A DNA stretch of 40,838 nt from Macrostomum lignano (Eukaryota), in NCBI GenBank assembly GCA_002269645.1, contig NIVC01002105.1:1-40838 (forward strand), in the 5' to 3' direction. The position numbers and the translations under genes were made by a program. The notes under the pieces are model-generated. The model searched no databases, had not been told where the DNA came from, and was given only the letters and a program-made list of their open reading frames with translations. Positions 9,617 through 40,838 of this stretch are shown piece after piece (position 1 is the stretch's first letter; the number at the start of each line of letters is the position of its first letter).

Positions 9617-12600
9617 TCAGCGGAAGCCTCGCCTTCGGTACCGACCAAATAGAATTTTGCTGAAGGCGTTCCTAAAGTCTGGAGAGAAGATCGTGTAGAT
9701 GATGGGATTGAGCAGGCTGTTCATGTAGCCCAGCCACAGGATCAGCGAGTGTCCATAGCCCGGGATGAGGCTGCGGCACTGGACACTGCGGAAAGGACAG
9801 ATCACCGCCCTCAGGAAGAAGGGGAACCAGCACACCAGAAAGCAGCCGGTGATGATTGCCAGGGTTCTCGCCGCCTTCCGCTCTCGTTTCTGCTCAAGCC
9901 GCTCCCTTCTCTGAGCGGCCCGGGACTGTGGAGTCTGCGGCGTCATCAGCAACGCCTGGCGACCATTGTGACTCCTGTCGCATTTGCCTCTGCCGCTGTT
10001 GCCTCGGTTGTTGCCGCCTCCACCGCTGCTTCCGCCACCGCCGCCGTTGCCGCCGCCGCCGCCTGAGTCGCCAGCGGGATCGCCATCAATGTCGTCATCG
10101 GCGTCAGGAGCGTCAGTATCTTCTCCGGCTGCTGAGTGACCGCCGCGACAGCCGCTGACAGACATAGGGATGGCGGTGGCGGTGGCGGACGTGGCCTGCG
10201 GGTGCTTGAAGGCCTTCTTCCGAATGCGCTTTCGAGCCGCTTGGTAGATGCGGATGTAGATGGCGATCATGAACAGCATGGGTAGGTAGAAGGCGCCCAC
10301 AGTGCTGAAAATGGTGTACAACCAGCCGTCGTTGATGTTGCACTCGCCTTTGCGGATCGCCCCTCGTCGCTTCTCCTCGTTCATGTACCTGGCCGGGATG
10401 CTGATGGCCATGCTGATCGCCCACATGGCGCCGATCATGAGGCCGATGCGCTTGCCGCTACGCACCCGAACGTAGTTGACATTGGTGACAGCCCAGTAGC
10501 GGTCAACCGCAATGCCTACGAGGTGCAGGATGGACGCCGTGCAGCACAGAATGTCGAAGCAGATCCACAGGTCGCACAGGTGGATACCTGCGCCGGGTGG
10601 GGAGGGGACTTCGAAAGCTTTAAATGTACTCTTAATTTGATACTTAAAAATAACTTAAACATGTTTGGGTGGGGCAAGACTCTAAAGTAATGGTTCAAGA
10701 ACGGACGAACATCCATGGTGGGATTTATTATTGGAGGGATCGAGGTCAAAAGTCAAAGTCCTCCCAAAGTCAAAGTGATTTAAAGTAACTATATTATAAC
10801 TATCCAGCCTCCCCGATGCAGTGGCAATCTTAGATCCGAGCGTCTAGCAGTGCTACGACTTTTTTGTATTTTTAGCACTTATTCAAAGCGCCACGGTTGC
10901 TGGCACAGCTGCTCCGAGAAAGTTCTTAGAAATATTAGTCCTTTCTAACAAGCTGGTCCGTAACGAATGCAAAATTCAGTGGGGTCTTTGCTTGATTCCG
11001 GATTAAGAAATCCTTTAGGCAACCATCTTGGCCACGGGATCGGAGACAGATTATCAATCCTTTAGCGTTTTGACTGTTCTCATGAATAAAACTGGCTAAT
11101 GTCCTTTTTCATAATCCACGCTTTGATGGAGTCATTGTTACTGATTTGATGGAGTCATTGTTACTGATTTGATGGAGTCGTTGTTACTGATTTGATTTAG
11201 TTATTGTTACTGATTTGATTTAGTCATTGTTACTGGTTTGATTGAGTCATTGTTACTGATTTGATTGAGTCGTTGTTACTGATTTGATGGAGTCGTTGTT
11301 ACTGATTTGATTTAGTCATTGTTACTGATTTGATTTAGTCATTGTTACTGATTTGATTGAGTCAGTGTTACTGATTTGATTTAGTCATTGTTACTGATTT
11401 GATTTAGTCATTGTTACTGATTTGATTGAGTCATTGTTACTGATTTGATTGAGTCGTTGTTACTGATTTGATTTAGTTATTGTTACTGATTTTATTTAGT
11501 CATTGTTACTGGTTTGATTGAGTCATTGTTACTGATTTGATTGAGTCATTGTTACTGATTTGATTGAGTCATTGTTACTGATTTGATTGAGTCATTGTTA
11601 CTGATTTGATTGAGTCATTGTTATTGGTTTTATAGAGCCATTTTTAATGCTTCGATGTAGTCATTTTTACCATTTAAAAAGATAATTGTATGCATTTCTT
11701 GCCAAAAGTTTTGAGCTAAAAAACCTGAGAGTTTCATCCCAAATCACGAAGCATAGAGTTGGGCGCACTAATATTTAGAAAAATGCTGTTGCTCAAGAAC
11801 ACAAACAATTTTCTTTGGGATTTGCTGGTGGTTGCGGGAGAAAAAAATCTGTAAACTCAAAAATCCCATATCAACAAGGCCGACTGGCTTCTTAATTCTG
11901 CCCTACTGCGCCACCAGCTGACAAATTCAGACAGCCGCTGCCAGCCCCCAGACAGTGTCACCGCGCATTAGCTCGCATGAGGGCCTCCCTGATAAGTGAT
12001 CTTCTTTTCCCATTCCGGCTGTCCCCATGCCCGCTTCCCTATTCCGTGAATGACTTCGATCCGCCTCTCTGCCTGCTGCTCAGAGTCTCCAAAGCGGGTT
12101 GGGCACGCGCGCGCGACAAAACAACTGATCGAAGCCTCCCCTGCTTGACTGCCTCCAGCCAGTCATTTCCCGCCAACCAGTGAGGAAGCAAATTTCTGGT
12201 AAAAATCCCCAAACTCAAAGTTGCGTAGGTCTGTCTTTTTGCAGAAATTTCCCCCATATCTAAAAGTGAGGGTGGCAGTTGCTGCGGGCCTTTCGTCTCC
12301 CGCTTAGCTGCCAGTTCAGAGGGAGGGCTCTTTCGATCAAGAAAGACTTTGGCTCCAGGCTTCCAATTTTCAAATGGGGCCCCGCCAGTTCGCGGTTTTC
12401 TCCCCTTTCCTGCTCTCACTCCCCTGCTCTCCCTCGGCAGGGCGGCAACTTTTCTGTCTGCTAATCTCCCTAGCATGCGAGAGGGTCTTACTGTTGTCAG
12501 GACCGAGAGAGAGGGAGAGGGGAAGGGGCAGAGCCGAGAGAAGCAACGGGAAGCTTCAGCTGTCATAAGCGGCCACGACGGTTGAAGACGAGCGCAGAGC

Positions 12601-18800: not shown

Positions 18801-20337
18801 GTCATGAGACAGTGAGACAAGCAAAGATTAGACAAGTGGTCATGAGCCAGGTGAGACAAGCAAAGATTAGACAAGTGGTCAAGAGCCAGGTGAGACAAGC
18901 AAAGATTAGACAAGTGCTCATGAGCCGGTGAGACAAGCAAAGATTAGACAAGTGCTCATGAGCCGATGAGGCAAGCAAAGATTAGACAAGTGCTCATGAG
19001 CCAGGTGAGCCAAGCAAAGATTAGACAAGTGCTCATGAGCCGGTGAGACAAGCAAAGGCTGGGCAGCGAAGAAGGATGCGAAATTGGCGTGAAAACATTT
19101 TTATACTGCAAGTGACGCCCCGTTGCTTGATTGTCATGCTTTTCGGATCTCAAGAGGGCCATCATTTATGATGCCATGCTTTCCCATCGTTAGAGTTCAA
19201 GCTATATCAATGAAGACTTCCGCGTGCAGTCCATTGCTCGCTTCAAGTGCTCACATGAGCAATGGAGTAGTGAACCGAAAAGCACAAAGGAGTCGAGTTG
19301 CTCAGATAGAGCAAATTTATTTTTGGAGCAGAAATTGTACTCCTCACGCGATCACAAAGAAACTCGTGGCTTATGTTTCTTTAATAATTTTATCGTAAAT
19401 AAATGAAAGCTCAAGTCTTGCAATATTCTCTACACAAGGTTAAATCCTCTGAACTGATGCAAACTGGCTATCGCAAGAATAAGCACAACGCGATTTGGAA
19501 AACTCTAAAGAAGTTCGAGAAGCTTTCACAACCCGGGCAATTTTGGACCACTTTTCAAGAGTTTTTCTCCAATTTTCACCAAAAATGCCTTCTCATTATG
19601 CATTTGAAACCGAGGATGTAGCAGTAGCAAGGGTTTCTGACTGACTGTCATTTCAGGGCTGTTTTCAGACCTACTGATGAGAGCATATTTTTGCTATTTG
19701 TTGTATTTTGTAGTTGTAGTTGTACGTGTATGGGAGAAACTTTCTATACACCATGTTTGACGAATTACAGGGGAGAAATTCGCTTTTTCTACCGCATTAT
19801 AAGTAAAATAGGAGTATATTTTGAATATTTGACGTAGTCTATTTGCTGTAGAGCTCAAAGCTTTAACAGTTTTTCAACACACCCTGAGACGTCCATACCC
19901 TGTAAAGAGTTTCAACAGACCAGAAGTACTTAAAAGAATCAGTGTCAGAAAAATCAATACAATGCCAGTCAAGCAGTTCCACCCTTGAAAATGAATGGCT
20001 ACGTACAACTTAGCGCTTATAAACTTTGGAATACCCTGTCTTCAAAATATCGATGCATTGAACAAGTCGGGGAGTCAGACCTTACCTGCAAGTTCTTCTC
20101 CAGGATAATAGCCGCCACTACAAACACGTTGCCAATTATGGTGCACAGAATGATGACTCCCAGGATGCAGCTGGTCAGAACGATGTGCAAATACCCGTAG
20201 CGGGCTTGAAATGCCAGCGCAGTTACGTTGTCACCCGCCGGTAACGCAACCGTTCCTGTCGACACGTTGCTGTCGTTTCGCTGCATCGGTAGCGTCATAC
20301 CCTGACCAGGGGTTGCCATGGCAACGGAAGACCACAT
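9617..20337 (-). CDS. 5-HT1: 5-HT1-type serotonin receptor; complement(join(9617..10587,12900..13008,20086..20337)), ~443 aa
   Basis: Spliced sequence IGNVFVVAAIILEKNLQ/SVSNYLIVSLAVADLMVA...YWWL-G/[34 protein letters not shown], with TM3 Asp. Also [37 protein letters not shown] and [26 protein letters not shown]. All junctions are GT-AG and in phase (252+109+971 nt). The start Met (20337 or a slightly downstream ATG) is less certain. Confidence 0.93.
11122..11630. repeat. 23-bp minisatellite (GAGTCATTGTTACTGATTTGATT), ~22 copies, in the 5-HT1 intron
   Basis: Direct inspection; period 23 (e.g. gtcatt at 11131 and 11154). Confidence 0.97.
11785..11920 (-). mobile_element. Possible degenerate SINE remnant
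   Basis: Minus strand carries A-box-like TGGCGCAGTAGG and, downstream, GTGTTCTTGAGCAA, resembling the central domain of the SINEs at 14690 and 23646. No clear B box. Confidence 0.3.
14690..14985 (-). mobile_element. tRNA-derived CORE-like SINE, copy 1
   Basis: Minus strand TGTAGCCCAGTAGTCAGAGCG...GGTTCGATTCCC, then GTGTCTTTGAGCAGGACACTTAA...CATTGCTTCAGTTCACCCAGCTATAAAATGGG. Alignable end to end with 23646-23946. Confidence 0.85.
15741..15800. repeat. (CT)30 microsatellite
   Basis: Direct inspection. Confidence 0.99.
16899..17133. mobile_element. hAT-like MITE inserted into the Gypsy gag
   Basis: CAGGGGTCGGCAAAC ... GTTTGGCCGACCCCTTG termini and a GA-rich interior. Degenerate flanks (agcgaaag / ggctaaag). 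The gag reading (..REHFS / ..KPKIF) resumes on both sides. Confidence 0.7.
18560..19057. repeat. 39-bp minisatellite (GAGCCAGGTGAGACAAGCAAAGATTAGACAAGTGGTCAT), ~13 copies
   Basis: Direct inspection. It explains the LAHDHLSNLCLSH repeat ORFs. Confidence 0.96.
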
Positions 20338-21506
20338 CGTGCAGGTGCTGAAGATGCCGAGGACCAAGAAGCTTTTCCGATTCAATACTTACGCGGTCTA
20401 TCAGTAGCCTGCGAGAGACGGGCGAGAAATAAAGCTAACCGGAGGCAGGCAAGCAGCTGTCGAGCAAAGGCGCTGGTTTCCCTACTGCAGGCGCTACCAA
20501 GCATGGGAAACGGCGATTGGACAGCTCTGCTGACTGCCAATGAAAGGGGCGGGGTCCGGGCCTCCTGTCTTGTTCTTGTTTCTTTCTAGCATTCCTGTCC
20601 TTTCCTTGTTTTACAGAGCACAGGCAGCATGCATGAATGACGTGCTCCACTCGCATGCGGCCTTAAATCCTTCCCTATATTTTTCCTTGCTTGTTCTCCC
20701 TTTCTTCTTCGTCTGTTTGTCCCATTTTCGCACTTATCTTGGCTTGCTACTATCTTCTCGATTGATATATTTCTCTCTGTGTGTCTCTCGCTCCCCTTTT
20801 CACTTGCAACCGTAGCCTCTCATTCAGTAAGTACACGTAAAGTATTGCTGTTCAACATTGAAATCTACTTTCTAAAGCAACCAAGCAGAGCTGCCAACCT
20901 GCTGTCATTCAGAAAACACCTCGCATGCCTTGCTTTCATGCTGGCTCCCCCCAACATCTTTTGTTACAAAAGAAGTTTGCCAGACGCTGACGCTGACGCC
21001 CACAGAGTCAGAGGATCGCGAGGCTGCTTCCAAGATTTCCAGTCCAGCTAGACGCAATTCAGAGGCTCTCGGCAAAATCATTTCAGCTAAAGAGTTAAGT
21101 CAGAGCGTAGGCCCAACAATTGACTTTAGAGGTGGGGTGGGGGACATAATTGCAGGAGCGACGCAAAGTGAAGTGGGGTCGACACGGGGCTTGTTTCACT
21201 ACATGGCAGCTGCTGTCTCTGCCGCATGCTTCTACTGCTCCCAGTGTCTGGGCGTGTCAGCCTTAAGTCTGCACGGAGACTCCGCCTCTGCAGTGACTGT
21301 TTCGATTTTACGAGAAGCAAGGGTGGCAGTATAAGGAAACATGGTTGAAACATACCTTATGTAAATACCTAAGCCTGTGAAAACTTTGCAGCGAAGGTTT
21401 TCGTTGGGAAGCATTGGGCCGATTTTCGAATGCAACGTAAACTTTCGATGCAAGATCTTTTGTCATTCAATCGTAGGAAAGATTAACTTGTGCGGAGTCG
21501 AAGAGA

Positions 21507-23235: not shown

Positions 23236-23571
23236 TCAGCCACGCCTGTGGAAGATTCGGTAGCCTTCGGCGGGATCGTTGCCCAGGTAGGTGATCTCGA
23301 TCATAGAGCCGCATGAAATCTGCAGATCCGAGGCTGTCATGCCCTGCAATTGTGTGATTGTTTAAAGAGTTGGTAAGCAGTCTGCAAATTTTGGATTCAA
23401 GCCCAAATATAGCATGCGAGCATAAGGCCTCACCTTGGACGCATCTGGGGACAGCATCTGATTCGGTATGAACTCCTTCTCGCCGTGCAGCTTCACGTAG
23501 ACTCCGGTCGGGGTGATGCTGGTGACGAGGGCGCGGTAGGCCTTGTTGAATTCCAAGTCCGGGTCGGCTCT
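23236..23571 (-). other. Two exons encoding an S1/OB-fold RNA-binding-like domain (PNPase C-terminal type)
   Basis: RADPDLEFNKAYRALVTSITPTGVYVKLHGEKEFIPNQMLSPDASK / GMTASDLQISCGSMIEITYLGNDPAEGYRIFHRRG*, split by a 90-bp phase-0 intron (23344-23433). The pattern resembles the animal PNPT1 S1 domain as recalled from memory. Confidence 0.7.
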
Positions 23572-26500
23572 CTGCCAGAGTAAAACGTTGCTGTGACATC
23601 ATACTATTTACACAATATGCTACTTACAAAGTAGCATGGGTAGTGACATAACAATAATTGATTACACCTGCACCAATCAGCAGATGTGCAACCGATAGCT
23701 CAGCCGCAGCTATTGCGCGGCGCATCTGAAGGCTGCGTACGGCTGTTCAGTACAAGGACTGGGGTGTCGCCACACACCCTCAGTTACCCTAGCTAATGCT
23801 GGCACCCATTTTACAGCTGGGTGAACTGAAGCAATGAAGAGTTAAAGTCTTGCTCAAGGACACAAATTATTCCAAGTGGGATCGAGAATCGAACCCCAGA
23901 CCTTTCAGTCGCGAGTCCGACGCTCTAACCACTAGGCTACAGCCCCTGGGTAGTGTGGGTAGTAAGACTATCCGAGGGAAGCAATCAGAAATGTAATTGC
24001 CATGAAGCAATAAAAAAGCATTCAGTAATGGCAGCTTACAGTTCGCTGAACCTGAAGCCCGATTATGTAGCCAATGTACTCCATTGCTACTACGAGGAAT
24101 GACAGGACAAAAGCGCCCGCAAGCACCATGAAGATGCCCGCAACTTGGTCGATTGTCACCTCTGTTAGCTCGGAATAGGTGATCAGGTTCTCACTAGCTG
24201 AGCAGAGCAGCACGGACCAGTAACTGAAAAGGAGCGATTGAATTCGTGTCGGTTCGAAAGCTTCTCCATTTATCAACATCAATGGGTTCAAAATTTTGTA
24301 GCTCAGGTCACAAAAGTGCCGGTAGGCCGGTAGTAACTTAGCACAATTACGAAGGTCGGGAGCGACACGCTATCAGCTTTGATTGTAACTATCCATCAAT
24401 TTACTTACTTATTTTTTATCTGCTCTAGCTCGCCTCGGTCGCTGAGCTCCTGGATGCGGTTATTGATGTTACTAATGAGATTCTTGTCCAAAGAGCTGCT
24501 GAGCACGATGTGCATACTCCGGGAGAGCTCCCCCTTGCCGGCGGATTTTAATTCGCAGACGCCAGCCGCGTAATAATTCACCGAGAGCTCATCGCCGATG
24601 TAGATCGGCTTCTTCCGACCTGGCAGGGTCGAGTTCTTTACTATGTTGGCAGCCGCTTCGATGCTGGGGACGAAAGTTGGCGGGGACGCGGCCAATTTCC
24701 AGTACACAGAGCTGGAGTTCTGCGCTCGCATCAAAGCGTACTCCGTGCTGTTCTGAACCATCAGCAGTTCGTAGTTGTCTCTCTCATCGTACAGGCCTTG
24801 CATGTTCGTGAACGGTAGGTTCGGGTTGGTGCGAATCAGAAGGAAAAAGTAATTAGTGCCGTACGTTGTGCAGTACATCAGGGAGGCGAACCACAGAATT
24901 AGAATGAAAATCCGAGAGCTTGGCTTCACTGCCGAGGACTTCAGCTTCGACATTACGAATGAGGAATAAACAAAAAAGGCCGCCTTGGCAACGCTGAATT
25001 TCGGTCGCTTGTAGTCGTTCGGGCTGATCTTGTCCGTCAGGTATAGCGTGGCCGACAAGATAATGAAGGCTGCGATAATGGCGAACCAAACGTTCCATGT
25101 GAGCGGGTACAAGGGGCTGAGGAAGTCCACTTCTTTAATGGCCGATCTTCCCATGGCGGCGACACCGCTGCTCATCAATGGGACCTCACTAAATGAGACG
25201 CGCGTGTCGTTGATATGGGCTATTGTCAGCTCCACCAGGTTAACTGTCATGTCTGCTTCCTAAGGTTTACGGAGCGAATGAGCTGAGTGTTGTGCTTATG
25301 GAAACCACAGATACTAGAATAACTGGGTATGTCACTCCCGAAAAATGCGTTCATCTGATACTCGGCAACATTGAAAACCGCCACTTCTGCCAATTCTCTA
25401 GGGTGGCTTTTTCAATGCCGATTATGTTTTTCAGTCTAAAAAAGATGTAGTCGCTTTTTTAACCATAAAAGGGAAATAAATGGTTTTAATTTTGGAATAT
25501 TCAAAGCTTTTGAAGCTCCCACAACCCCCAGTAGGGGGGTACTGCCGAAACGCATTTCGCCGAAAAGGTCAATAGTTTCTAACCACGAGCGTATCAGACC
25601 GATACTGTAGATAGATGGAAGATATACACTCAGCTCGTATAATAGCTGCTTGAGCCATGGTGCTCTCAGTGTTATTACGAGTTTATCTTCTACTCTAAAA
25701 GCGAGCACAGCAGGATTTTCTGCTCTTATGTGCGAATTCGCTTTTAGATCATAGACATCTCTCGACTGTCTTAGCTGCGTCCCACCCATAGAGCAATAAT
25801 TTTCCGTCGCGGGTTGTGAAATGACCTTTCCGGCAAAACGCGTTTCGGCGGAATGAGAGGTAACCCCCAGTAGGGCGGGGCTGACGATATGTTTCTCAAA
25901 AACTTCCAGTCACTCGTCGCCCAATTGAAGGATAGAGTAGGAGGCTCATGATGATGGGCACCCAGTTTTTTTACACTACATTTATTGCGAATGACATATC
26001 TAGTTATTCTATTGGCTCTGACAAAATATTAAAGAAATGAATGCGAAAAACTTTGCTGCAGCATCTCACCCCTTTCTGGACCAACTCAAAGTAGTTGGGT
26101 CCAAGCTTCAAGCTGGTTAGGTCGTAAGTGAACAAGTCTTTACTGATCTTCTCCAGCACACTAATGCTGTAGCCAGAATATCCACCAGACACTCCCATCA
26201 GGTAAGGCTTTACCTAACGGGGAGGAACAAGTTGCATCACTTGATTAGAATTTACGGCACACGATGTCGAAGTCGCATATTAGCTAATGTGCTCATAGCA
26301 TACTAAAAGATGAAAGTGCCCTGAGAAAAAAAGGCTGACGTTACGGCATTGAGTGTACCTGAGCAAATAACCAATAAATCAGCTGATTTAAACTCAATTG
26401 TTGCAGCAATGCGAAATTCACTTACCAAATCTCCGGCGAGGCGCAGCACCGGCAACTTCAGAGTTTCCTTCGTTCTCGAGGACTGGAGGCTGTTTGACAC

Positions 26501-29500
26501 CGACTCGTTCCACGTGGCGTACTGCAGAGCAGAACAAGTTGATTCAGTTTCAGCTCAAATATAGAACAGAAGTAATCGGTAAAGGGAATGTTAACTCTGG
26601 CAACTAAAGACTACCGGTAGAAACAACGAGACACCCCATTCAAATTGCTTCCTTTGGATTTCAGTCGAACTTCAGGCTCTAGAATGCAGTACAAAGTAAA
26701 GCTCGAGACCAAACCGACTGCAATCAATAACTCAATTCCCAGCGAGCCTGTGCACTGGTCGGGCACGTTAGGTCCGGTCATTGCAGTCGGTTTGGTCCAG
26801 AGCTAAACTTCTGGCTCCATTCCAACTGCAGTTGACATCCCACTTTCCAGTGCTTGGCCGAATCAGACACTCACATATGCATAGCATTATTGTGATTTAA
26901 AGTTTGAAAATGCAGCCGGCAAATTAAGTGTCCGAATTACCAGCGTCAGATTTGTCGCCGAGCCAGAATCCACGCTCATCAGATCAGCAGCGAACATGTC
27001 CAGACGTCTGTCCACCGAGTTAAAGTGCATTATCGACACTGATCCGACGGTGGTTGTCTGCGGAGCAACAAGCGAAACGGTGAGTATATTTTGACATCTG
27101 AGGCCTGCAGGACTTTCATTTATGGCTAGATGGGTAGAAGTGTCTTAGAAGCAGCTGGCAACCAACAGGAAGACAAAGTCACTGCGATTTCAGTCTCCCA
27201 GATTCTCCCTCAGAGTGATGGGATGCTTCAATAGTCTGAATCGTGGTACTGACAGGGACTAGTCAAGTAGAAGGACAGGAAACTACGGTCCTTGGAAACT
27301 TTTAGGAGGCCGGTTTTACTGAAAAATACAGTACGGAGAATGGAAGTTCTCATTTTGTAAGCAAAATTTTGTAATTGCTTTTAGTCGAAGGCAGACCCAA
27401 TTTTAAACTTTTGATATACCTTAATTTATTTCCATTTAATTTTATGGTAGGACATAAACATCAAATTAACATAGAATTCAAATTTTTCAAACAAAAAGCT
27501 CTACAAATGTCAATTGAGTTATTAGAAAGTTAAGTCGTATCAAAATATGAAAATTTTGTCTGCTATCAAAAGAAATTTACATTTTTTGCTTACAAAAAAA
27601 GAAGCTCCATTCTCCGTAATGTATTTTTTTCGGTAAACCTGCCTCCTAAAAATTTCCAAAGACCGTAGCTTCGTGTTTTTCTAATTGATTGGTCCTTGGG
27701 TACTAACTCGTTATCAAAATAGATCACAAGAGATTCTGGGTTTTCTTTGCATCGCGCATTTAAAAAAATGATGAGCGTACCATGAAAATTTTTTCCATAA
27801 TAGTGGCGTTAGTGACATTCTTCTCATAGCTGGCGATGAAGTGAGAGATGACGTCACTAGCCAGGGACATGTTGAGCTGGGCATCATTAGTGATTGCAGG
27901 GTTCGGCAGCCGGAAGGTGATGATGCTCGCTCCCGTGGCATAGAAGGGGAGAATCTCGCTTTGATCAAGAAACTGTAGCATAGAGGCAGTGGAGCACATT
28001 AAAAAGTATATATACACGAAACATGTCTGAGTAAAAATTAATACAATTGAGCAGTTTTACCAGTTCCGGAACGATCCAGATGGCAGAGCTCTTCAACATG
28101 CTGAGGTATACAGCCTGCATGAAGATGCAAAGGTTGTTTTTCAATAAAACTTTGATTCCATCGAAACACATTCGTTTCGTCACACAGGATTCCTATGCAA
28201 ATAGCTCGTATACAAGTTAAAACGAGTTTTGGACCTTATTTTGACGCAACCAAAGTTTTTTAATGACTCGAGGATATAAAAATAGGTGCGTTTTTAGAAG
28301 CCATTATTCATGCAGCAGAACACCGATGCAAAAGTCTCAACATTATGTCCCCCCAAAAGCAGACAAAACAGACCTTTATTGGCTAATATCCGCCAATAAC
28401 TCCCAAAAAGGATAGGGAAAAACTCGCGATTTTAGCTTGTATTCACATTTGATCCTAACTTTTTGGCCAAAAACAAAAACATTTTATTGCTTTATGGCTA
28501 AAGATGTTTATTTTAATACCCCTTTCTATGAGAGAAAAGGATGTCTGTGAAAAAGTGGTTCTGTGTTTTATGCACATTTAAATTGCCTATTTTCTAACTT
28601 AGATTATATCATACTTCTTTTAGGATGCTCGACGCGAACCCGGGCTGCTTTGAGACAATCATGTAGACAGTGGAATCTACAGGTGAATACAGAGTTGTTT
28701 CATACAGCTGCTGTCGAATCTCCGGGCTATTGCTGGAGTTCACCACAGATATGCGAAACTCCAGCGTGATGTTCCTCTCAAACAGGATGTTGAGCCCTGC
28801 GGGTAAGATTGAGAGCAGTGAAGCAAATGGTACTTAGCTTGAGGTACAATGCTTTGATTTTTAGTTGTGAGTAGAAAAGATCCTGCACTTAGCTTGAAGT
28901 ACAATGCTTTGATTTTTAGTTGTGAGTAGAAAAGGCCCTGTACTTAGCTTGAGGTACAATGATTTGATTTTTAGTTGTGAGTAGAAAAGACCCTGCACTT
29001 AGCTTGAGGTACAATGCTTTGATTTTTAGTTGTGAGTAGAAAAGACCCTGCACTTAGCTTGAGGTACAATGATTTGATTTTTAGTTGTGAGTAGAAAAGA
29101 CCCTGCACTTAGCTTGAGGTACAATGCTTTGATTTTTAGTTGTGAGTAGAAAAGACCCTGCACTTAGCTTGAGGTACAATGCTTTGGTTCTTAGTTGTCG
29201 CGGAAGCTCAACATAGCTACGAGTATTTGTTCGGACCCGGGAAACTCACTTGCTCCAACATCGTCAACGAGCATGACGATGGTTTCTCGCTTTCCGACTT
29301 GAGTCGTGAGGTTAACAGAAGCTAGCATCAGCTCATCCAGCAGAGCATTTGCCAGCAGAGTCGTGCTGTCGCTCAGGTAGCTAGAAGAAGTTAGCGCCGG
29401 GTCCAGCGTCTTCTCGCTCAGCGAATAGAATGGGATTGTCAGAAAAGAGCAGGCAGACGCGAGCAACTCGTTGAAGGTGCCGATTACTAGGCTGAATGAC

Positions 29501-31239: not shown

Positions 31240-34200
31240 TTAGTCAACCTTGTAGACGCTATTGGTCGCGGTGCCGCCGCATTTGTCTTTGGAATTTCCA
31301 GAGCAGCGTTTGTTGCACTTGGACTCTTTTGCACCGCCACTGTTTCCGTAGTTGTCACCGCAGCTGCACTTCGAGCCGTTCTTTAGACCGAAATACGAGA
31401 ACTTCTTAGCTTTGCACAGGTTGTTGCACTTCCACACTGTCATCTTGCCCCGGCCAGCAACAACCGAGAAGTCTGGGTACTTGGGATCGTCCAGGAAGCA
31501 CCCAAGCGAAGCTAAAAATGAACAAAAATCATACTGTTAAAGTAAAAGGAAAGTAATCTAATTACCACTGACGCTAAAGCCGCAAAATAAATTAACCCGT
31601 GAGCATAGAATCTCAACATGCACAACCCGAATAAAGACTATTACAGACTCTCACCTGAATGTGGCATCGCGCAGATATGACGCGTCACAGTTCGGCACGG
31701 GCATTCTGAAAATAATTTTGGAAACATTAAGCAGCGTCAGCCGCAACAAAATATAAGAAATAGCTCGTAGAAGCAATAAACCCGGATTAAAAACTTACTT
31801 CCTCTCAGAGCATTAGCAAGATCGCGAGTATTCTTCGGGAAAGCACTGAAGCTCATTTTCCCTTTAGCTGCTAGTTCAATTAGTTTCATCACCTAAAAAT
31901 TAAAAAATCCGAATACGTTATAATGTAAAATGAAAGGAAAAGTACAGTCACAGAGATACCATTTCAACTGTCACCTTATCGGAAACTCGACGGTTCAACT
32001 TGGCTACCAGTCCACCAGTATTTTTCGCGAGAACATCATACTCAGCACCGCGGCCACAAAGACGACCGCTGCCGATTGCGATGAAACGAATTCGTTTCGA
32101 CTTCAACAACTTTGCTGCACTAGACGTCAAACTGCGGTCCTTAGCCGATGCATCAGTAAACAGAAGCAAAACAGAATCTTTATCAGCCAATTTCGCCGCG
32201 TCAATCACGGCAGACATTGAATACTCAGGACAATCGCCACCACCTCTAATTTTAAGCCCGTTGAGAAATCGCTGAACCCTCGAAATGGATTTTGTTCGAA
32301 TGACGTGCCGCTTATAAGGATCCCCGTAGCTTGAAACAACAAAATTCTGGAACCGCCTGTTTGACGACAAAATCCTTGAAATGCTACGGCGGACAGATTT
32401 ATAAACACTGCTCATGCTGCCCGTTGTGTCGACAACAATCACCAAAGAACCAAGCCTCTGAGATCCCGAAGCGGGGGCACAGCCACATACAAGGCGCTTC
32501 ACAGTCGTTGCCTTCGATCCCGATGGGCAGGTTTTCACTGAAATATAAGCAATATTCGCACATTTGAAACTACTTTATATTCCTGAATAATTCTGTACAA
32601 CCGACCCACCTGAGGCTTTCGGATTATATCCAGTTGTAAACACGTTGTTTCTCCATGCGCCTCCGCAGTAGGTCGACTTGTCTCCTCTGCACTGTACTCT
32701 GCACTCCAAGTTTGATCGGATTCTGTACCTGCCATAGTGGTTGCCGCACCAGCACTGGTAGCCATTTTGCACACCGAAGAAGCGATATTTCCTGGCTTTG
32801 CACGCCTTGTAGCACTTTGGCACAGTAACTGATCCGGAGAGAACCAGCTTTCTAAGATCTCTGGAGCTCTTGTCCAGATAGCAGCCGAGATGCTTCAATC
32901 CGGGCACTGAAAGCGGTAGCGACAGACTACTACTGTACACATTATTTGCTGTCGTTTATGTAAACAACTTATGAGAAAGGCTCAACTCTTGGACGCCCAC
33001 GCTTTCGCTGATGATATTTAATGCATTTAAAGTTTCAAGATGTCAGACTAATTTGCGCACAATTTCAAATAGCCACCTTATATTGCTTGAAACTACTCGT
33101 ATTTATGGAAGGAAGAGAAACGGCGCGCGCAATTAGTGAGGCATCGCATAGTTCTCAACTGAGAGCTGCAAACTAATATAAACACGAGCTAGGTGGACAA
33201 AAAAGCAATCAATTGCGAATCTGTACTGTTGTACTCACGACGAACAGGCTTGCTGCCGATTCCAGTCGAGTAGACAGAGTTTCTCCAAGAGCCGCCGCAG
33301 GTTCGTCTTTTGTCGCCTCTACAGCGCGTTCTGCACTGCTTTGCATTGACTCGGCCAAAGCTGCCATATTTGTTGCCGCAGGTGCACGCAGATCCAGCCT
33401 GGAGGCCAAAGTACCTGTAGCCGCGAGACTTGCAGTACTTCAGACAGTACGCCTTTGTGGTCCGGTGACCGGCGCCGTGTACAAGGGGCAAGTCGCGCTT
33501 CGAATTGTCGCGGAAGCAGCCAAGTAGGGTAACTCCGGAGGCGTGCTCTTCGAGTCCGGTAGCGTACACGTCGTTTCTCCAGGAGCCGCCACAGTAGGTC
33601 GTCTTGTCTCCTCTGCACTGGTAGCGGCACTCGCGTTTGTCGCGTCGGCCGTAGCGACCGTAGTGGTTGCCGCACCAGCACTGTTTTCCTATCTGAACGC
33701 CAAAGAATCGGAATCCCTTTTTCTTGCATAGTCCGTAGCACCTTCCAACAGTCATGCTGCCTTTTCCTCCCAGAGTTGGAAGATCGCGTCTCCGGCCGTC
33801 AACAAAGCAGCCAATGTGAGACATTCCAGGTGCTTAAAAGAGAAATAGTGGGCACATGCAGGTCAGCAAAACCCCATCCAAACCGTACAGAGCAATCTCG
33901 TTTTACATTCAAAAATATCTAATATACCGTACGAGCCTACGAGCGAGCGTGGAAAGCGAATTTTCTGCTTGACTGCACACTTACTCTTGAAGCTCTTGGG
34001 CTTCAGTCCGGTTGTGAAGACGCTGTTCCTCCATGGTCCACCACATTTGGACCTCTTGTCGCCCTTACAGGTGGACCTGGCGCAATCCTTGCTCTTCGCT
34101 TTTCCATACCGACCGACGGTGTTTCCGCAGGTGCACGCATTGCCGTTTTGCAGACCAAAGTACCTGTAGCCCTTGGCTCGACAATAGCGGAAGCAGTAAG

Positions 34201-37200
34201 CCTTTGTCGTCTTGTAGTTGGCAGTGTAAACTACCGGCAAATCCCTGTAGCGATTGTCCTTAAAGCAGCCGACGTACTTCACTCCGGCCGCTGGAAGATC
34301 AGAAGGGCATCATTTTAGTTACGACTACGAATATTAAACGCTCCAACTAGATTCAATCGGCTGGCATCGCCCACCTCTCTTGGATTAGTCTAGTCTATAA
34401 ACCATTGTTCATTGAGACATCTATTAGTAGTGCTGCTGGCTAAATGGCTAGATGGCGCAACGAAAAACAGCAGTACACTAGGATTGCTTGGATCTCCAGA
34501 AAGCTACAAGCGTAAACCTGTTGACAGACTCGGTTACCTTTGCTGGCGACGACAACACCCGTCGCGTAGACATTGTTTCTCCACGCGCCTCCGCAGTAGG
34601 TCGACTTGTCTCCTCTGCACTGTACTCTGCACTCCAAGTTTGATCGGATTCTGTACCTGCCATAGTGGTTGCCGCACCAGCACTGGTAGCCATTTTGCAC
34701 ACCGAAGAAGCGATATTTCCTGGCTTTGCACGCCTTGTAGCACTTTGGCACAGTAACTGATCCGGAGAGAACCAGCTTTCTAAGATCTCTGGAGCTCTTG
34801 TCCAGATAGCAGCCGAGATGCTTCAATCCGGGCACTGAAAGCGGTAGCGACAGACTACTACTGTACACATTATTTGCTGTCGTTTATGTAAACAACTTAT
34901 GAGAAAGGCTCAACTCTTGGACGCCCACGCTTTCGCTGATGATATTTAATGCATTTAAAGTTTCAAGATGTCAGACTAATTTGCGCACAATTTCAAATTA
35001 GCCACCTTATATTGCTTGAAACTACTCGTATTTATGGAAGGAAGAGAAACGGCGCGCGCAATTAGTGAGGCATCGCATAGTTCTCAACTGAGAGCTGCAA
35101 ACTAATATAAACACGAGCTAGGTGGACAAAAAAGCAATCAATTGCGAATCTGTACTGTTGTACTCACGACGAACAGGCTTGCTGCCGATTCCAGTCGAGT
35201 AGACAGAGTTTCTCCAAGAGCCGCCGCAGGTTCGTCTTTTGTCGCCTCTACAGCGCGTTCTGCACTGCTTTGCATTGACTCGGCCAAAGCTGCCATATTT
35301 GTTGCCGCAGGTGCACGCAGATCCAGCCTGGAGGCCAAAGTACCTGTAGCCGCGAGACTTGCAGTACTTCAGACAGTACGCCTTTGTGGTCCGGTGACCG
35401 GCGCCGTGTACAAGGGGCAAGTCGCGCTTCGAATTGTCGCGGAAGCAGCCAAGTAGGGTAACTCCGGAGGCGTGCTCTTCGAGTCCGGTAGCGTACACGT
35501 CGTTTCTCCAGGAGCCGCCACAGTAGGTCGTCTTGTCTCTCTGCACTGGTAGCGGCACTCGCGTTTGTCGCGTCGGCCGTAGCGACCGTAGTGGTTGCCG
35601 CACCAGCACTGTTTTCCTATCTGAACGCCAAAGAATCGGAATCCTTTTTCTTGCACAGTCCGTAGCACCTTCCAACAGTTATGCTGCCTTTTCCTCCCAC
35701 AGTTGGAAGATCGCGCCTCCGGCCGTCAACAAAGCAGCCAATGTGAGACATTCCAGGTGCTTAAAAAAGAAATAGTGGGCACACGCAGGTCAGTAAAACC
35801 CCAGCTGGTTGGCTCCTAATCCAAGACACGGACAGAGCCAGCCCGTTGAAATTTTTTATATATGTCTATAACTTGGGTGTCTTTGGTCTTCTGATCTCTC
35901 ACTACTAAGCTCAATAATAACTTCAATTACCAATGTGAGAGCCATATAACTAAGGCGGCGGATTCGACTAACTTTTCCTGATGATGCAATCAATTGATGT
36001 TAACTTACTGACCGTTGTATTGTATTTGGTGTTCGCAATCTCGAGATTAACTCAAGTCTATGGTAGGTTCTAATTGTTCGGGGGAACCGAAGGTTCAGTC
36101 TGTTGTAGGGAAAGGATGTCTACTTTTCATTAGCTAAGACTGGGATCATGTGCTCAGCTTTTGCTTGCTGGAGCGCGTTCATTGGTTGGAAATACATTCA
36201 AACTGGATTGAAACTTTCAGGGCCAAAATGTCTCACTTCACCGTTTTACTTTACAAAATGTCTTATGTACCCTACGAGCCTACGAGCGAGCGTGGAAAGC
36301 GAATTTTCTGCTTGACTGCACACTTACTCTTGAAGCTCTTGGGCTTCAGTCCGGTTGTGAAGACGCTGTTCCTCCATGGTCCACCACATTTGGACCTCTT
36401 GTCGCCCTTACAGGTGGACCTGGCGCAATCCTTGCTCGACGCTCTTCCATACCGACGACGGTGTTTCCGCAGGTGCACGCATTGCCGTTTTGCAGACCAA
36501 AGTACCTGTAGCCCTTGGCTCGACAATAGCGGAAGCAGTAAGCCTTTGTCGTCTTGTAGTTGGCAGTGTAAACTACCGGCAAATCCCTGTTGCGATTGTC
36601 CTTGAAGCAGCCGACGTACTTCACTCCGGCCGCTGGAAGATCAGAAGGGCATCATTTTAGTTACGACTACGAATATTAAACTCCAACTAGATTTAATCGG
36701 CTGGCATCGCCCACCTCTCTTGGATTAGTCTAGTCTATAAACCATTGTTCATTGAGACATCTATTAGTAGTGCTGCTGGCTAAATGGCTAGATGGCGCAA
36801 CGAAAAACAGCAGTACACTAGGATTGCTTGGATCTCCAGAAAGCTACAAGCGTAAACCTGTTGACAGACTCGGTTACCTTTGCTGGCGACGACAACACCC
36901 GTTGCGTACACGTCGTTTCTCCAGGAGCCGCCACAGTAGGTCGTCTTGTCTCCTCTGCACTGGTAGCGGCACTCGCGTTTGTCGCGTCGGCCGTAGCGAC
37001 CGTAGTGGTTGCCGCACCAGCACTGTTTTCCTATCTGAACGCCAAAGAATCGGAATCCCTTTTTCTTGCATAGTCCGTAGCACCTTCCAACAGTCATGCT
37101 GCCTTTTCCTCCCAGAGTTGGAAGATCGCGTCTCCGGCCGTCAAAAGCAGCCAATGTGAGACATTCCAGGTGCTTAAAAGAGAAATAGTGGGCACATGCA

Positions 37201-40200
37201 GGTCAGCAAAACCCCATCCAAACCGTACAGAGCAATCTCGTTTTACATTCAAAAATATCTAATATACCGTACGAGCCTACGAGCGAGCGTGGAAAGCGAA
37301 TTTTCTGCTTGACTGCACACTTACTCTTGAAGCTCTTGGGCTTCAGTCCGGTTGTGAAGACGCTGTTCCTCCATGGTCCACCACATTTGGACCTCTTGTC
37401 GCCCTTACAGGTGGACCTGGCGCAATCCTTGCTCTTCGCTTTTCCATACCGACCGACGGTGTTTCCGCAGGTGCACGCATTGCCGTTTTGCAGACCAAAG
37501 TACCTGTAGCCCTTGGCTCGACAATAGCGGAAGCAGTAAGCCTTTGTCGTCTTGTAGTTGGCAGTGTAAACTACCGGCAAATCCCTGTAGCGATTGTCCT
37601 TGAAGCAGCCGACGTACTTCACTCCGGCCGCTGGAAGATCAGAAGGGCATCATTTTAGTTACGACTACGAATATTAAAGGCTCCAACTAGATTCAATCGG
37701 CTGGCATCGCCCACCTCTCTTGGATTAGTCTAGTCTATAAACCATTGTTCATTGAGACATCTATTAGTAGTGCTGCTGGCTAAATGGCTAGATGGCGCAA
37801 CGAAAAACAGCAGTACACTAGGATTGCTTGGATCTCCAGAAAGCTACAAGCGTAAACCTGTTGACAGACTCGGTTACCTTTGCTGGCGACGACAACACCC
37901 GTCGCGTAGACATTGTTTCTCCACGCGCCTCCGCAGTAGGTCGACTTGTCTCCTCTGCACTGTACTCTGCACTCCAAGTTTGATCGGATTCTGTACCTGC
38001 CATAGTGGTTGCCGCACCAGCACTGGTAGCCATTTTGCACACCGAAGAAGCGATATTTCCTGGCTTTGCACGCCTTGTAGCACTTTGGCACAGTAACTGA
38101 TCCGGAGAGAACCAGCTTTCTAAGATCTCTGGAGCTCTTGTCCAGATAGCAGCCGAGATGCTTCAATCCGGGCACTGAAAGCGGTAGCGACAGACTACTA
38201 CTGTACACATTATTTGCTGTCGTTTATGTAAACAACTTATGAGAAAGGCTCAACTCTTGGACGCCCACGCTTTCGCTGATGATATTTAATGCATTTAAAG
38301 TTTCAAGATGTCAGACTAATTTGCGCACAATTTCAAATTAGCCACCTTATATTGCTTGAAACTACTCGTATTTATGGAAGGAAGAGAAACGGCGCGCGCA
38401 ATTAGTGAGGCATCGCATAGTTCTCAACTGAGAGCTGCAAACTAATATAAACACGAGCTAGGTGGACAAAAAAGCAATCAATTGCGAATCTGTACTGTTG
38501 TACTCACGACGAACAGGCTTGCTGCCGATTCCAGTCGAGTAGACAGAGTTTCTCCAAGAGCCGCCGCAGGTTCGTCTTTTGTCGCCTCTACAGCGCGTTC
38601 TGCACTGCTTTGCATTGACTCGGCCAAAGCTGCCATATTTGTTGCCGCAGGTGCACGCAGATCCAGCCTGGAGGCCAAAGTACCTGTAGCCGCGAGACTT
38701 GCAGTACTTCAGACAGTACGCCTTTGTGGTCCGGTGACCGGCGCCGTGTACAAGGGGCAAGTCGCGCTTCGAATTGTCGCGGAAGCAGCCAAGTAGGGTA
38801 ACTCCGGAGGCGTGCTCTTCGAGTCCGGTAGCGTACACGTCGTTTCTCCAGGAGCCGCCACAGTAGGTCGTCTTGTCTCCTCTGCACTGGTAGCGGCACT
38901 CGCGTTTGTCGCGTCGGCCGTAGCGACCGTAGTGGTTGCCGCACCAGCACTGTTTTCCTATCTGAACGCCAAAGAATCGGAATCCCTTTTTCTTGCACAG
39001 TCCGTAGCACCTTCCAACAGTTATGCTGCCTTTTCCTCCCACAGTTGGAAGATCGCGCCTCCGGCCGTCAACAAAGCAGCCAATGTGAGACATTCCAGGT
39101 GCTTAAAAGAGAAATAGTGGGCACATGCAGGTCAGCAAAACCCCATCCAAACCGTACAGAGCAATCTCGTTTTACATTCAAAAATATCTAATATACCGTA
39201 CGAGCCTACGAGCGAGCGTGGAAAGCGAATTTTCTGCTTGACTGCACACTTACTCTTGAAGCTCTTGGCTTCAGTCCGGTTGTGAAGACGCTGTTCCTCC
39301 ATGGTCCACCACATTTGGACCTCTTGTCGCCCTTACAGGTGGACCTGGCGCAATCCTTGCTCTTCGCTTTTCCATACGACCGACGGTGTTTCCGCAGGTG
39401 CACGCATTGCCGTTTTGCAGACCAAAGTACCTGTAGCCCTTGGCTCGACAATAGCGGAAGCAGTAAGCCTTTGTCGTCTTGTAGTTGGCAGTGTAAACTA
39501 CCGGCAAATCCCTGTAGCGATTGTCCTTGAAGCAGCCGACGTACTTCACTCCGGCCGCTGGAAGATCAGAAGGGCATCATTTTAGTTACGACTACGAATA
39601 TTAAACGCTCCAACTAGATTCAATCGGCTGGCATCGCCCACCTCTCTTGGATTAGTCTAGTCTATAAACCATTGTTCATTGAGACATCTATTAGTAGTGC
39701 TGCTGGCTAAATGGCTAGATGGCGCAACGAAAAACAGCAGTACACTAGGATTGCTTGGATCTCCAGAAAGCTACAAGCGTAAACCTGTTGACAGACTCGG
39801 TTACCTTTGCTGGCGACGACAACACCCGTCGCGTAGACATTGTTTCTCCACGCGCCTCCGCAGTAGGTCGACTTGTCTCCTCTGCACTGTACTCTGCACT
39901 CCAAGTTTGATCGGATTCTGTACCTGCCATAGTGGTTGCCGCACCAGCACTGGTAGCCATTTTGCACACCGAAGAAGCGATATTTCCTGGCTTTGCACGC
40001 CTTGTAGCACTTTGGCACAGTAACTGATCCGCGGAGAGAACCAGCTTTCTAAGATCTCTGGAGCTCTTGTCCAGATAGCAGCCGAGATGCTTCAATCCGG
40101 GCACTGAAAGCGGTAGCGACAGACTACTACTGTACACATTATTTGCTGTCGTTTATGTAAACAACTTATGAGAAAGGCTCAACTCTTGGACGCCCACGCT

Positions 40201-40838
40201 TTCGCTGATGATATTTAATGCATTTAAAGTTTCAAGATGTCAGACTAATTTGCGCACAATTTCAAATTAGCCACCTTATATTGCTTGAAACTACTCGTAT
40301 TTATGGAAGGAAGAGAAACGGCGCGCGCAATTAGTGAGGCATCGCATAGTTCTCAACTGAGAGCTGCAAACTAATATAAACACGAGCTAGGTGGACAAAA
40401 AGCAATCAATTGCGAATCTGTACTGTTGTACTCACGACGAACAGGCTTGCTGCCGATTCCAGTCGAGTAGACAGAGTTTCTCAAGAGCCGCCGCAGGTTC
40501 GTCTTTTGTCGCCTCTACAGCGCGTTCTGCACTGCTTTGCATTGACTCGGCCAAAGCTGCCATATTTGTTGCCGCAGGTGCACGCAGATCCAGCCTGGAG
40601 GCCAAAGTACCTGTAGCCGCGAGACTTGCAGTACTTCAGACAGTACGCCTTGTTGGTCCGGTGACCGGCGCCGTGTACAAGGGGCAAGTCGCGCTTCGAA
40701 TTGTCGCGGAAGCAGCCAAGTAGGGTAACTCCGGAGGCGTGCTCTTCGAGTCCGGTAGCGTACACGTCGTTTCTCCAGGAGCCGCCACAGTAGGTCGTCT
40801 TGTCTCCTCTGCACTGGTAGCGGCACTCGCGTTTGTCG
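31240..40838 (-). CDS. Large multi-WSC plus hemicentin-type vWA protein, probably extracellular; 5' end lies beyond the window
   Basis: Exons in transcription order (minus): A 40436->40838 (partial), B 39805-40103, C 39254-39557, A 38508-39101, B 37878-38174, C 37325-37630, A/B hybrid 36878-37172, C 36328-36632, A 35168-35759, B 34538-34834, C 33985-34290, A 33239-33832, B' 32610-32906, vWA 31975-32537, 31799-31892, 31655-31705, terminal WSC 31240-31511. WSC consensus GCF.D...R.L...TV..C...C..KGYRYFG.Q.G..C.CG...C...C.GD....CGG.WRN.VY. vWA has MIDAS-like VVDTTGSM, GGGDCPE and LFTDAS. Several upstream copies carry 1-2-bp indels. Confidence 0.85.
32610..40838. repeat. Tandem segmental array, ~1.93-kb unit (exons A-B-C plus introns), with a 3340-bp higher-order repeat
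   Basis: Exons and introns are near-identical between copies. ORFs at 33863, 34440 and 35142 recur at 37203, 37780 and 38482 (each +3340). Confidence 0.95.

Follow-up and report, generated by a model that had tools for sequence, protein, structure and literature searches.

The stretch of DNA analysed here (the window) is the whole of contig NIVC01002105.1 of the flatworm Macrostomum lignano, assembly GCA_002269645.1, 40,838 nucleotides long, and the gene of interest, Mlig012789.g2, lies on its minus strand. The gene encodes a highly divergent subunit of the ionotropic glutamate receptor (iGluR) family, with a signal peptide, extracellular domains, the membrane segments M1-M2-M3 and a final M4 helix. 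M4 is followed by a C-terminal tail with the predicted fold of an S1 domain, nearest in sequence to the S1 domain of animal polynucleotide phosphorylase (PNPase, gene PNPT1). This fusion is transcribed and under strong purifying selection, and it is present in three Macrostomum paralogue groups. An earlier note, made from the sequence alone, had described an iGluR-family subunit with a PNPase-like S1 tail; its observation is confirmed by the analysis, and its interpretation is supported in every part that could be tested. We give roughly an even chance to the fuller reading, in which a PNPT1-derived S1 domain was exon-shuffled onto a transcribed iGluR and would act as a docking module beneath the pore, most likely for structured RNA or ribonucleoprotein (RNP).

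In the channel half, Pfam Lig_chan (PF00060) matches the window protein with 59.5 bits (cutoff 30.8), and a phmmer search of the PDB aligns residues 425-759 (335 residues) to the core of GluA2, comprising the ligand-binding and transmembrane domains, with E = 7e-19. The alignment covers both ligand-binding lobes, and GluD1 and GluN2B rank closely after GluA2; none of these iGluR matches extends past M4. The match to SBP_bac_3 is weak (19.3 bits against a cutoff of 26.4), and the UniProt name of the protein is 'PBPe domain-containing'. In a word-indexed search with the channel half, the matches at E < 1e-5 were all to Macrostomum paralogues. The M3 gate motif is TTYGTNYFF, compared with the SYTANLAAF of iGluRs, so that Y, T/G and N alone are kept. 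The residue equivalent to Arg485 of GluA2, which binds the alpha-carboxylate, is an Asn (TLVREEV aligns with AHINDTR), and an Asn at this position is also found in many ionotropic receptors (IRs). Given this replacement, the extracellular ligand is probably not glutamate or another alpha-amino acid, and the protein is better described as an IR-like orphan subunit of the iGluR superfamily than as a strict glutamate receptor. In the usual topology of iGluRs, with a signal peptide, an extracellular N-terminus and a re-entrant M2, the segment after M4 is cytoplasmic, and the tail would therefore be cytoplasmic too.

The window tail has 81 amino acids, with the S1 barrel starting about 12-15 residues past M4. 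In single-sequence comparisons, the tail on its own scores 16.6 bits with Pfam S1 (PF00575; E = 0.011), under the gathering threshold of 22 bits, while the tail of a paralogue scores 24.7 bits and passes it; 5 of the 7 aligned tails match the S1 profile at E <= 0.1. When a profile of the two Macrostomum tails is searched against all PDB sequences, the sole significant match is to human PNPT1, residues 630-707 (E ~1e-6), and a six-tail profile matches human PNPT1 with E = 1.2e-14, the next S1 protein being Rrp5 at E = 0.099. The chains concerned are 9kjt and 9njb, and HMMER reproduces with them the alignment to the human PNPT1 S1 domain given in the earlier note, a similarity much too strong to be due to chance. 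These two profiles were used to judge the affinity to PNPT1, and carry no PNPase sequence; a further profile that included the spider PNPT1 sequence (E = 2e-22) was not used for this purpose, being circular. The difference between PNPT1 and Rrp5 in the six-tail search shows a kinship with animal PNPT1 specifically, beyond a generic S1 relationship.

AlphaFold2, run with a seven-row alignment (predicted local distance difference test, pLDDT, 83.2; predicted template modelling score, pTM, 0.71), models the tail as a five-stranded S1/OB barrel in the order beta1-beta2-beta3-helix-beta4-beta5, the helix between beta3 and beta4 being short. The first eight residues, which form the linker after M4, are predicted to be disordered. 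Foldseek comparison of the model with the PDB gives only S1 domains at E < 1e-3 (all 27 such matches among the matches listed). The top ones are ribosomal protein S1, eIF2-alpha, a PNPase KH-S1 construct, RNase II and Tex, with query-normalised TM-scores of at most 0.67, and human PNPase has the highest sequence identity (32%) among the matches listed.

The coding region of Mlig012789.g2 has 13 exons and encodes 852 amino acids, from the ATG at 30084 to the TGA at 23238-23236. In the rebuilt model all 12 introns are GT-AG, and the translation, which begins MPGRAS, is letter for letter the 852-amino-acid open reading frame (ORF) of PAA60834.1 (882 amino acids, partial), the product annotated on the window's own contig. 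The C-terminus of PAA60834.1, ...GLQVQRTRADPDLEF...SPDASKGMTASDLQ...FHRRG, corresponds exactly to the splice proposed in the earlier note, and the end of the M4 exon, both intron lengths, the acceptors, phases, peptides, stop codon and AATAAA are all as given there. The features are as follows.

30084-30006, 29914-29774, 29522-29250, 28796-28615, 28114-28061, 27972-27781 and 27057-26941, minus strand: exons 1-7.
26521-26426 and 26213-26070, minus strand: exons 8-9.
25259-24409, minus strand: exon 10, with the end of ligand-binding lobe 1, M1, the pore loop M2, M3 and lobe 2 (PF00060, E = 4e-16; alignment to the ligand-binding and transmembrane domains of GluA2).
24223-24040, minus strand: exon 11, with the pre-M4 linker and the M4 helix (~24144-24061; alignment to GluA2 M4); acceptor ttttcag at 24223, product YWSVLL...VAGIFMVLAGAFVLSFLVVAMEYIGYIIGLQVQRT, donor ...GGGCTTCAGGTTCAGCGAACT/gtaagc at 24040; ends GLQVQRT, phase 0.
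23572-24039, minus strand: intron 11, 468 bp, gtaagc...tggcag, with a high-copy repeat of ~300 bp resembling a short interspersed element (SINE) at ~23648-23948.
23571-23434, minus strand: exon 12 (S1a), RADPDLEF...SPDASK, acceptor ctctggcag/, translation RADPDLEFNKAYRALVTSITPTGVYVKLHGEKEFIPNQMLSPDASK; forms beta1-beta3 of the S1 fold together with its short helix.
23344-23433, minus strand: intron 12, 90 bp, phase 0.
23343-23236, minus strand: exon 13 (S1b), GMTASDLQ...YLGNDPAEGYRIFHRRG and TGA, translation GMTASDLQISCGSMIEITYLGNDPAEGYRIFHRRG followed by the stop; beta4-beta5 of the S1 fold.
23220-23215, minus strand: AATAAA polyadenylation signal, 15 nt past the stop, read from the sequence.

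Intron 11 had been described as mostly one SINE. As an account of a dispersed repeat of ~300 bp this is fair: there are more than 3,000 first-look candidates in the genome, and among the 40 scored there are dispersed copies at 90-92% identity. A tRNA-like head was not called by either ARAGORN or Rfam, and the word SINE is used here as a description only, since it is based on size and copy number. It is worth adding that intron 3 of the same gene (window 28832-29198) contains a 55-bp tandem repeat, with 6.7 copies and a 95% match.

The S1 exons are placed in the channel transcript by the GenBank model, itself built from transcripts, and by five independent lines: a second paralogue group with an identical exon order, a third in which M4 and S1a form a single exon, the spliced contig of a related species, the selection on S1a, and the occurrence of the fusion in other organisms. 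According to the M. lignano genome paper (PMC5730564), the GenBank gene set of the Mlig_3_7 assembly (764 Mb) combines a filtered transcriptome, built from RNA-seq under genome guidance with StringTie and TACO, with a de novo transcriptome; the channel-S1 junctions are therefore read-supported and not ab initio guesses. The second paralogue group, Mlig026429 (C67, C995, C1699, C1700), is 39% identical overall to Mlig012789.g2, and has its transmembrane (TM), M4, S1a and S1b exons in the same order, with phase-0 junctions at equivalent sites; the GenBank models of this group likewise splice M4 to S1. Exon by exon, the identity between the two groups is 53-56% for S1, 53% for the pore/TM exon, 45% for M4 and 32-33% for the N-terminal part. 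The third group (UniProt A0A1I8HFD1), with at least five genomic copies, has M1-M3, lobe 2, M4 and S1a in one uninterrupted exon of 386 codons, so that here the linkage of channel and S1 needs no splicing. Its sole intron follows ...SDPTK, at the equivalent phase-0 site within the S1 domain, and the site of intron 12 is common to all three groups. A Logan contig from run SRR28338165, which at 77-83% nucleotide identity is from a related species, is spliced from TM to M4 to S1a. Comparison with this sequence gives ratios of nonsynonymous to synonymous substitution (dN/dS) of 0.09 (TM exon), 0.04 (M4) and 0.05 (S1a), where dS is ~1.1-1.5.

The absence of other PNPase exons nearby, which the earlier note had reported, is borne out by profile searches with TIGR03591 and PF03726: no RNase PH, PNPase-alpha or KH match was found on the window contig, C2105, and the idea that the iGluR is nested in a PNPT1 intron is therefore unsupported. 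The scenarios in which the transcript exists solely with intron 11 retained, in which the S1 exons are spliced to distant PNPase exons, or in which profile searches show no S1 match, are excluded or unsupported. As a detail of the second paralogue group, the GenBank model at C67 ~543,900 has a GC-AG intron at the M4/S1a junction (CGAATG/gcaagt), and an older prediction places the donor, a GT, 12 nt further downstream and thereby gains the residues ASSS.

The fusion is also found outside Macrostomum. A representative search identified the protein A0A0X3NVQ4 (949 amino acids) of the tapeworm Schistocephalus solidus, which has both Lig_chan and an S1 tail. Its channel exons are present on a S. 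solidus genomic contig, which covers residues 472-756 only. Together with A0A0X3PEC1 it has been named automatically in UniProt as 'Polyribonucleotide nucleotidyltransferase 1'; for A0A0X3NVQ4 this name is wrong, because the protein has no RNase PH or KH domain, and the misnaming is evidently due to its S1 tail. The second case from the search of other taxa is a PacBio HiFi metagenome contig of a eukaryote from a Tara Pacific coral sample (Logan ERR14224705, SAMEA6034818; 477-1296), in which one uninterrupted ORF, apparently a single exon, covers lobe 2 and M4 and continues through the entire S1 domain to the stop codon. If the source of this contig is not a flatworm, then the fusion is older or more widespread than the Platyhelminthes. 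Word-indexed searches with the window tail or the S. solidus tail alone returned only themselves (e.g. BOX15_Mlig012789g4), and a metagenome scan with the two-tail alignment gave no further family members. The tail, which every subunit of this family carries, has been kept, under strong selection, at least since the macrostomid/tapeworm split. Matches to WD40, LRR and Tc3-transposase in the representative search were discarded, being repeat-driven and limited to short segments.

With regard to origin, we suggest exon shuffling in an early flatworm, or in an ancestor before it, by which the last exons of PNPT1, those that code for S1, came to lie at the 3' end of an iGluR gene. Recombination within introns would have brought about the capture, after which introns would have shifted slightly or been lost. 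The intron comparison uses a single PNPT1 exon map, that of a spider PNPT1-like gene, which has one phase-0 intron directly before the S1 domain (...LLNKE/EDPELEY) and another within it (...LDYGI/VHRRK). The flatworm channel introns, T/RADPDLEF and SPDASK/GMTAS, are also both phase 0, and in ungapped segments of equal length they lie one and two codons from the spider positions. A match of the channel introns to those of PNPT1 is therefore seen in phase, and in position only approximately; introns matching this nearly fit a capture of the terminal S1 exons of PNPT1, and are not proof of it. An intact PNPT1 gene, which had been expected elsewhere in the M. lignano genome, was not located with three probes: PF03726 had no match, a spider KH+S1 probe found nothing, and TIGR03591 (E <= 10) gave generic matches only (a DHX8-like S1, KH domains and exosome-subunit-like RNase PH exons). 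These searches were run exon by exon, with poor sensitivity across introns, so that gene loss cannot be claimed.

The classical RNA-site residues of the S1 domain, reportedly those set out by Bycroft et al. in 1997 for E. coli PNPase, are F19, F22, H34, D64 and R68. The window tail has only two of the five, an aromatic at F22 and the Asp; in it His34 has become Pro, and Arg68 a Tyr that has an Arg as neighbour. Across the tail alignments, the F22 position is Tyr or Trp in most sequences and D64 is kept; F19 is replaced by Thr, as it is in human PNPT1, H34 by Pro, and R68 by Tyr or Glu with an Arg adjacent. The aromatic, the Asp and the neighbouring Arg are retained in most family tails, and the OB binding face is their best-conserved part. 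The best-conserved motif of the family is F[IL]PNxxLxPD; its counterpart in PNPT1 is LLHNTQL, and the difference is an indication that the ligand has changed. With an isoelectric point (pI) of 6.1 the window tail is slightly acidic; the other family tails have pI values of 8.3-9.8. RNA binding, which featured in the heading of the earlier note, should accordingly be read as a predicted property only.

If the tail is a docking module, a tetramer would carry four S1 domains just beneath the pore, where they would stand in for the usual disordered tail on the cytoplasmic side. The most likely ligand would be a structured RNA or RNP, and binding would either tether the receptor to RNA granules or keep RNA at the membrane. 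The S1 domain of human PNPase is needed for binding structured RNA, and also contacts the Suv3 helicase; in the closed state the S1 domains pack against each other (PMC11851098). RNA is favoured as a ligand because stem-loop RNA is what the S1 domain of human PNPT1 captures and because the tails are best conserved at the OB binding face, and protein docking or self-association is nearly as likely, because the human S1 domain also binds Suv3 and packs against its own copies. The more specific proposal, that the tail binds particular structured RNAs or RNPs and that this is the first ligand-gated channel family with a built-in RNA-binding domain, is tentative, and we consider it rather unlikely. 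If it is true, mRNAs or granules would be held under the pore, and chemosensory or synaptic activation would be coupled to local RNA handling; conversely, cytoplasmic RNA could control the gating or clustering of the channel. Several points weigh against the docking of RNA by a PNPT1-derived tail. Channel activity and tetramer formation are assumed from membership of the family; the introns are near the PNPT1-like positions and not identical to them, and the three probes reached no PNPT1 locus; and the window tail does not attain the Pfam threshold for S1. The case for an RNA ligand is itself weak, in that most of the RNA-site residues appear to be lost, the window tail is not basic, and the best-conserved motif has diverged from PNPT1. 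The same points suit a different function for a fusion that is nonetheless real, in which the S1 domain has been repurposed for protein contact or self-association and has no physiological RNA ligand. The domain would then bind a scaffold, or would form a ring on the cytoplasmic side by which the tetramer is stabilised or gated. We regard this as a genuine possibility, though short of probable. The tails of iGluRs normally act through protein contacts, the human S1 domain touches both Suv3 and, in the closed form, other S1 domains (PMC11851098), and the loss of the His34 and Arg68 equivalents, the conservation of the derived F[IL]PNxxLxPD and the pI of the window tail all point the same way. 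On the other hand, the tails conserve both the fold and the canonical OB binding face, most of them keep the aromatic at the F22 position, the Asp and the nearby Arg, most are basic, and no partner protein is known.

Two further explanations deny the tail any role in the channel, and both are far less credible. One takes the S1 exons for a gene of their own downstream of the channel, or for a fragment of PNPT1, with the join to M4 arising from read-through, from a polycistronic transcript or as an annotation artefact. M. lignano does have many polycistronic precursor transcripts (PMC5730564), an older prediction (UPI0007A2BE68, 974 amino acids) merged the paralogue channel and S1 with the downstream G-protein-coupled receptor (GPCR), and a reading that retains intron 11 would stop at ...QRTVSCHY*. 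However, M4 shares one exon with S1a in the third paralogue group and one uninterrupted ORF with the whole of S1 on the coral-sample contig, the phase-0 junctions are kept between the Mlig012789 and Mlig026429 paralogues, and spliced contigs come from two other species. In addition, the S1a exon lacks its own start codon and 5' exon, and no RNase PH or KH exon was found on the whole contig. This origin of the join is thus highly improbable. Hardly more can be said for the idea that the tail is a functionless, decaying relic of a past exon capture. The window locus is present in four copies (C2105, C1234, C941, C2172), which are 99.6-99.9% identical with introns included, as a consequence of the 180 Mb of the M. 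lignano assembly that lie in blocks duplicated at >=95% identity (PMC5730564). In two of the four, 1-bp indels break the S1 frame (C941 ~26,590; C2172 ~54,040-54,250), at sites equivalent to window 23304, 23473-23475 and 23274, and the GenBank proteins there are truncated or frameshifted. Decay could account for these indels and for the low Pfam score of the window tail, but given the near-identity of the copies the indels are recent lesions, which would make these copies young pseudogenes, or long-read assembly errors. Moreover, dN/dS for S1a is as low as for the channel core, the S1 identity between the old paralogues is above that of the N-terminal half, and the tail is kept from Macrostomorpha to Cestoda. 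We therefore attach very little weight to decay.

Comparison with known systems brings out what is shared and what is not. The S1 domain of animal PNPT1 (human ~629-708; PDB 9kjt, 9kjr, 9njb) resembles the flatworm tail in its five-stranded OB fold, its length and its C-terminal place, and the two have in common the motifs LEF, Y.A.(V/I)T.I, GV.VKL and Y(L/F)G.DP..G. In PNPT1, however, the domain follows a KH domain and the RNase PH ring, whereas in the flatworm protein it follows the M4 helix of a channel. PNPT1 is mitochondrial, with three S1 domains per trimer, whereas the flatworm S1 domain would be cytoplasmic, beneath the plasma membrane, with four per tetramer. The LLHNTQL of PNPT1 has become F(I/L)PNxxLxPD in the flatworm tails, which have lost the equivalents of His34 and Arg68. 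The window gene has no RNase PH pair, alpha domain or KH domain and is not a PNPase; it is the S1 domain alone that derives from PNPT1.

With the iGluRs and IRs (GluA2, GluD1, GluN2B) the protein has in common the Lig_chan domain, a bilobed ligand-binding domain, the order M1-M2-M3-M4 and a signal peptide. The C-terminal tails of iGluRs are regarded as disordered strings of short protein-binding motifs, interacting with PDZ domains and kinases, whereas that of the flatworm channel is a folded S1 domain. Channels fused to an enzyme-derived, folded cytoplasmic domain are known as 'chanzymes', examples being the TRPM7 kinase and TRPM2 NUDT9-H. Like the flatworm channel, these have gained a globular domain of a soluble enzyme at the cytoplasmic C-terminus; they differ in belonging to another channel superfamily and in having a catalytic or nucleotide-binding domain, whereas the flatworm domain is a module of nucleic-acid-binding type. 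We know of no channel with an S1 domain.

Full-text literature searches found no description of the fusion, of these genes, or of an iGluR with an S1 or PNPase domain. The novelty claimed for an iGluR with an OB-fold tail holds in the literature searched, and does not extend to the databases, where the protein and its correct splice were already public: only the recognition of the domain is new, the sequences and the join having been available beforehand. The public members of the family are PAA60834.1, PAA70474.1, A0A1I8JDP0, PAA64932.1 and A0A1I8HFD1 in M. lignano, and the two S. solidus entries given above. They are named 'hypothetical protein', 'PBPe domain-containing protein' or 'Polyribonucleotide nucleotidyltransferase 1', and their precomputed Pfam annotation is PF00060 only, with the S1 tail unrecognised. 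One outcome is therefore a correction of database names, in particular that of a tapeworm channel labelled PNPT1.

More broadly, a whole channel lineage has exchanged a disordered tail for a compact OB fold from an RNA-degrading enzyme, and the proposed capture would add an instance of exon shuffling in which the intron phases have been nearly preserved. To our knowledge, a link between channels and RNA has so far been backed only through adaptor proteins. If the S1 tail still binds RNA, it would connect a ligand-gated channel directly and physically with RNA; if it binds protein, it would be a clear example from nature of an S1 fold put to use in scaffolding. The function is a prediction, and since transgenesis and RNA interference are available in M. 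lignano, the question is testable either way.

The channel gene has identifiable neighbours on both sides. Upstream, at window 31240-40838 on the minus strand, there is a long gene of tandem WSC domains (Pfam WSC, E = 1e-36), whose repeat units are near-identical to each other across several kb and are followed by a VWA domain exon at 31948-32574. Directly downstream, also on the minus strand, is a rhodopsin-type GPCR of aminergic appearance (20017-20388 and 9617-10654; 7tm_1, E = 4e-47). The same GPCR neighbour lies 3' of the second paralogue, so that the microsynteny is conserved. A different rhodopsin-family GPCR is found on the plus strand, at window 1920-2315 and 3874-4929 (7tm_1, E = 6e-18).

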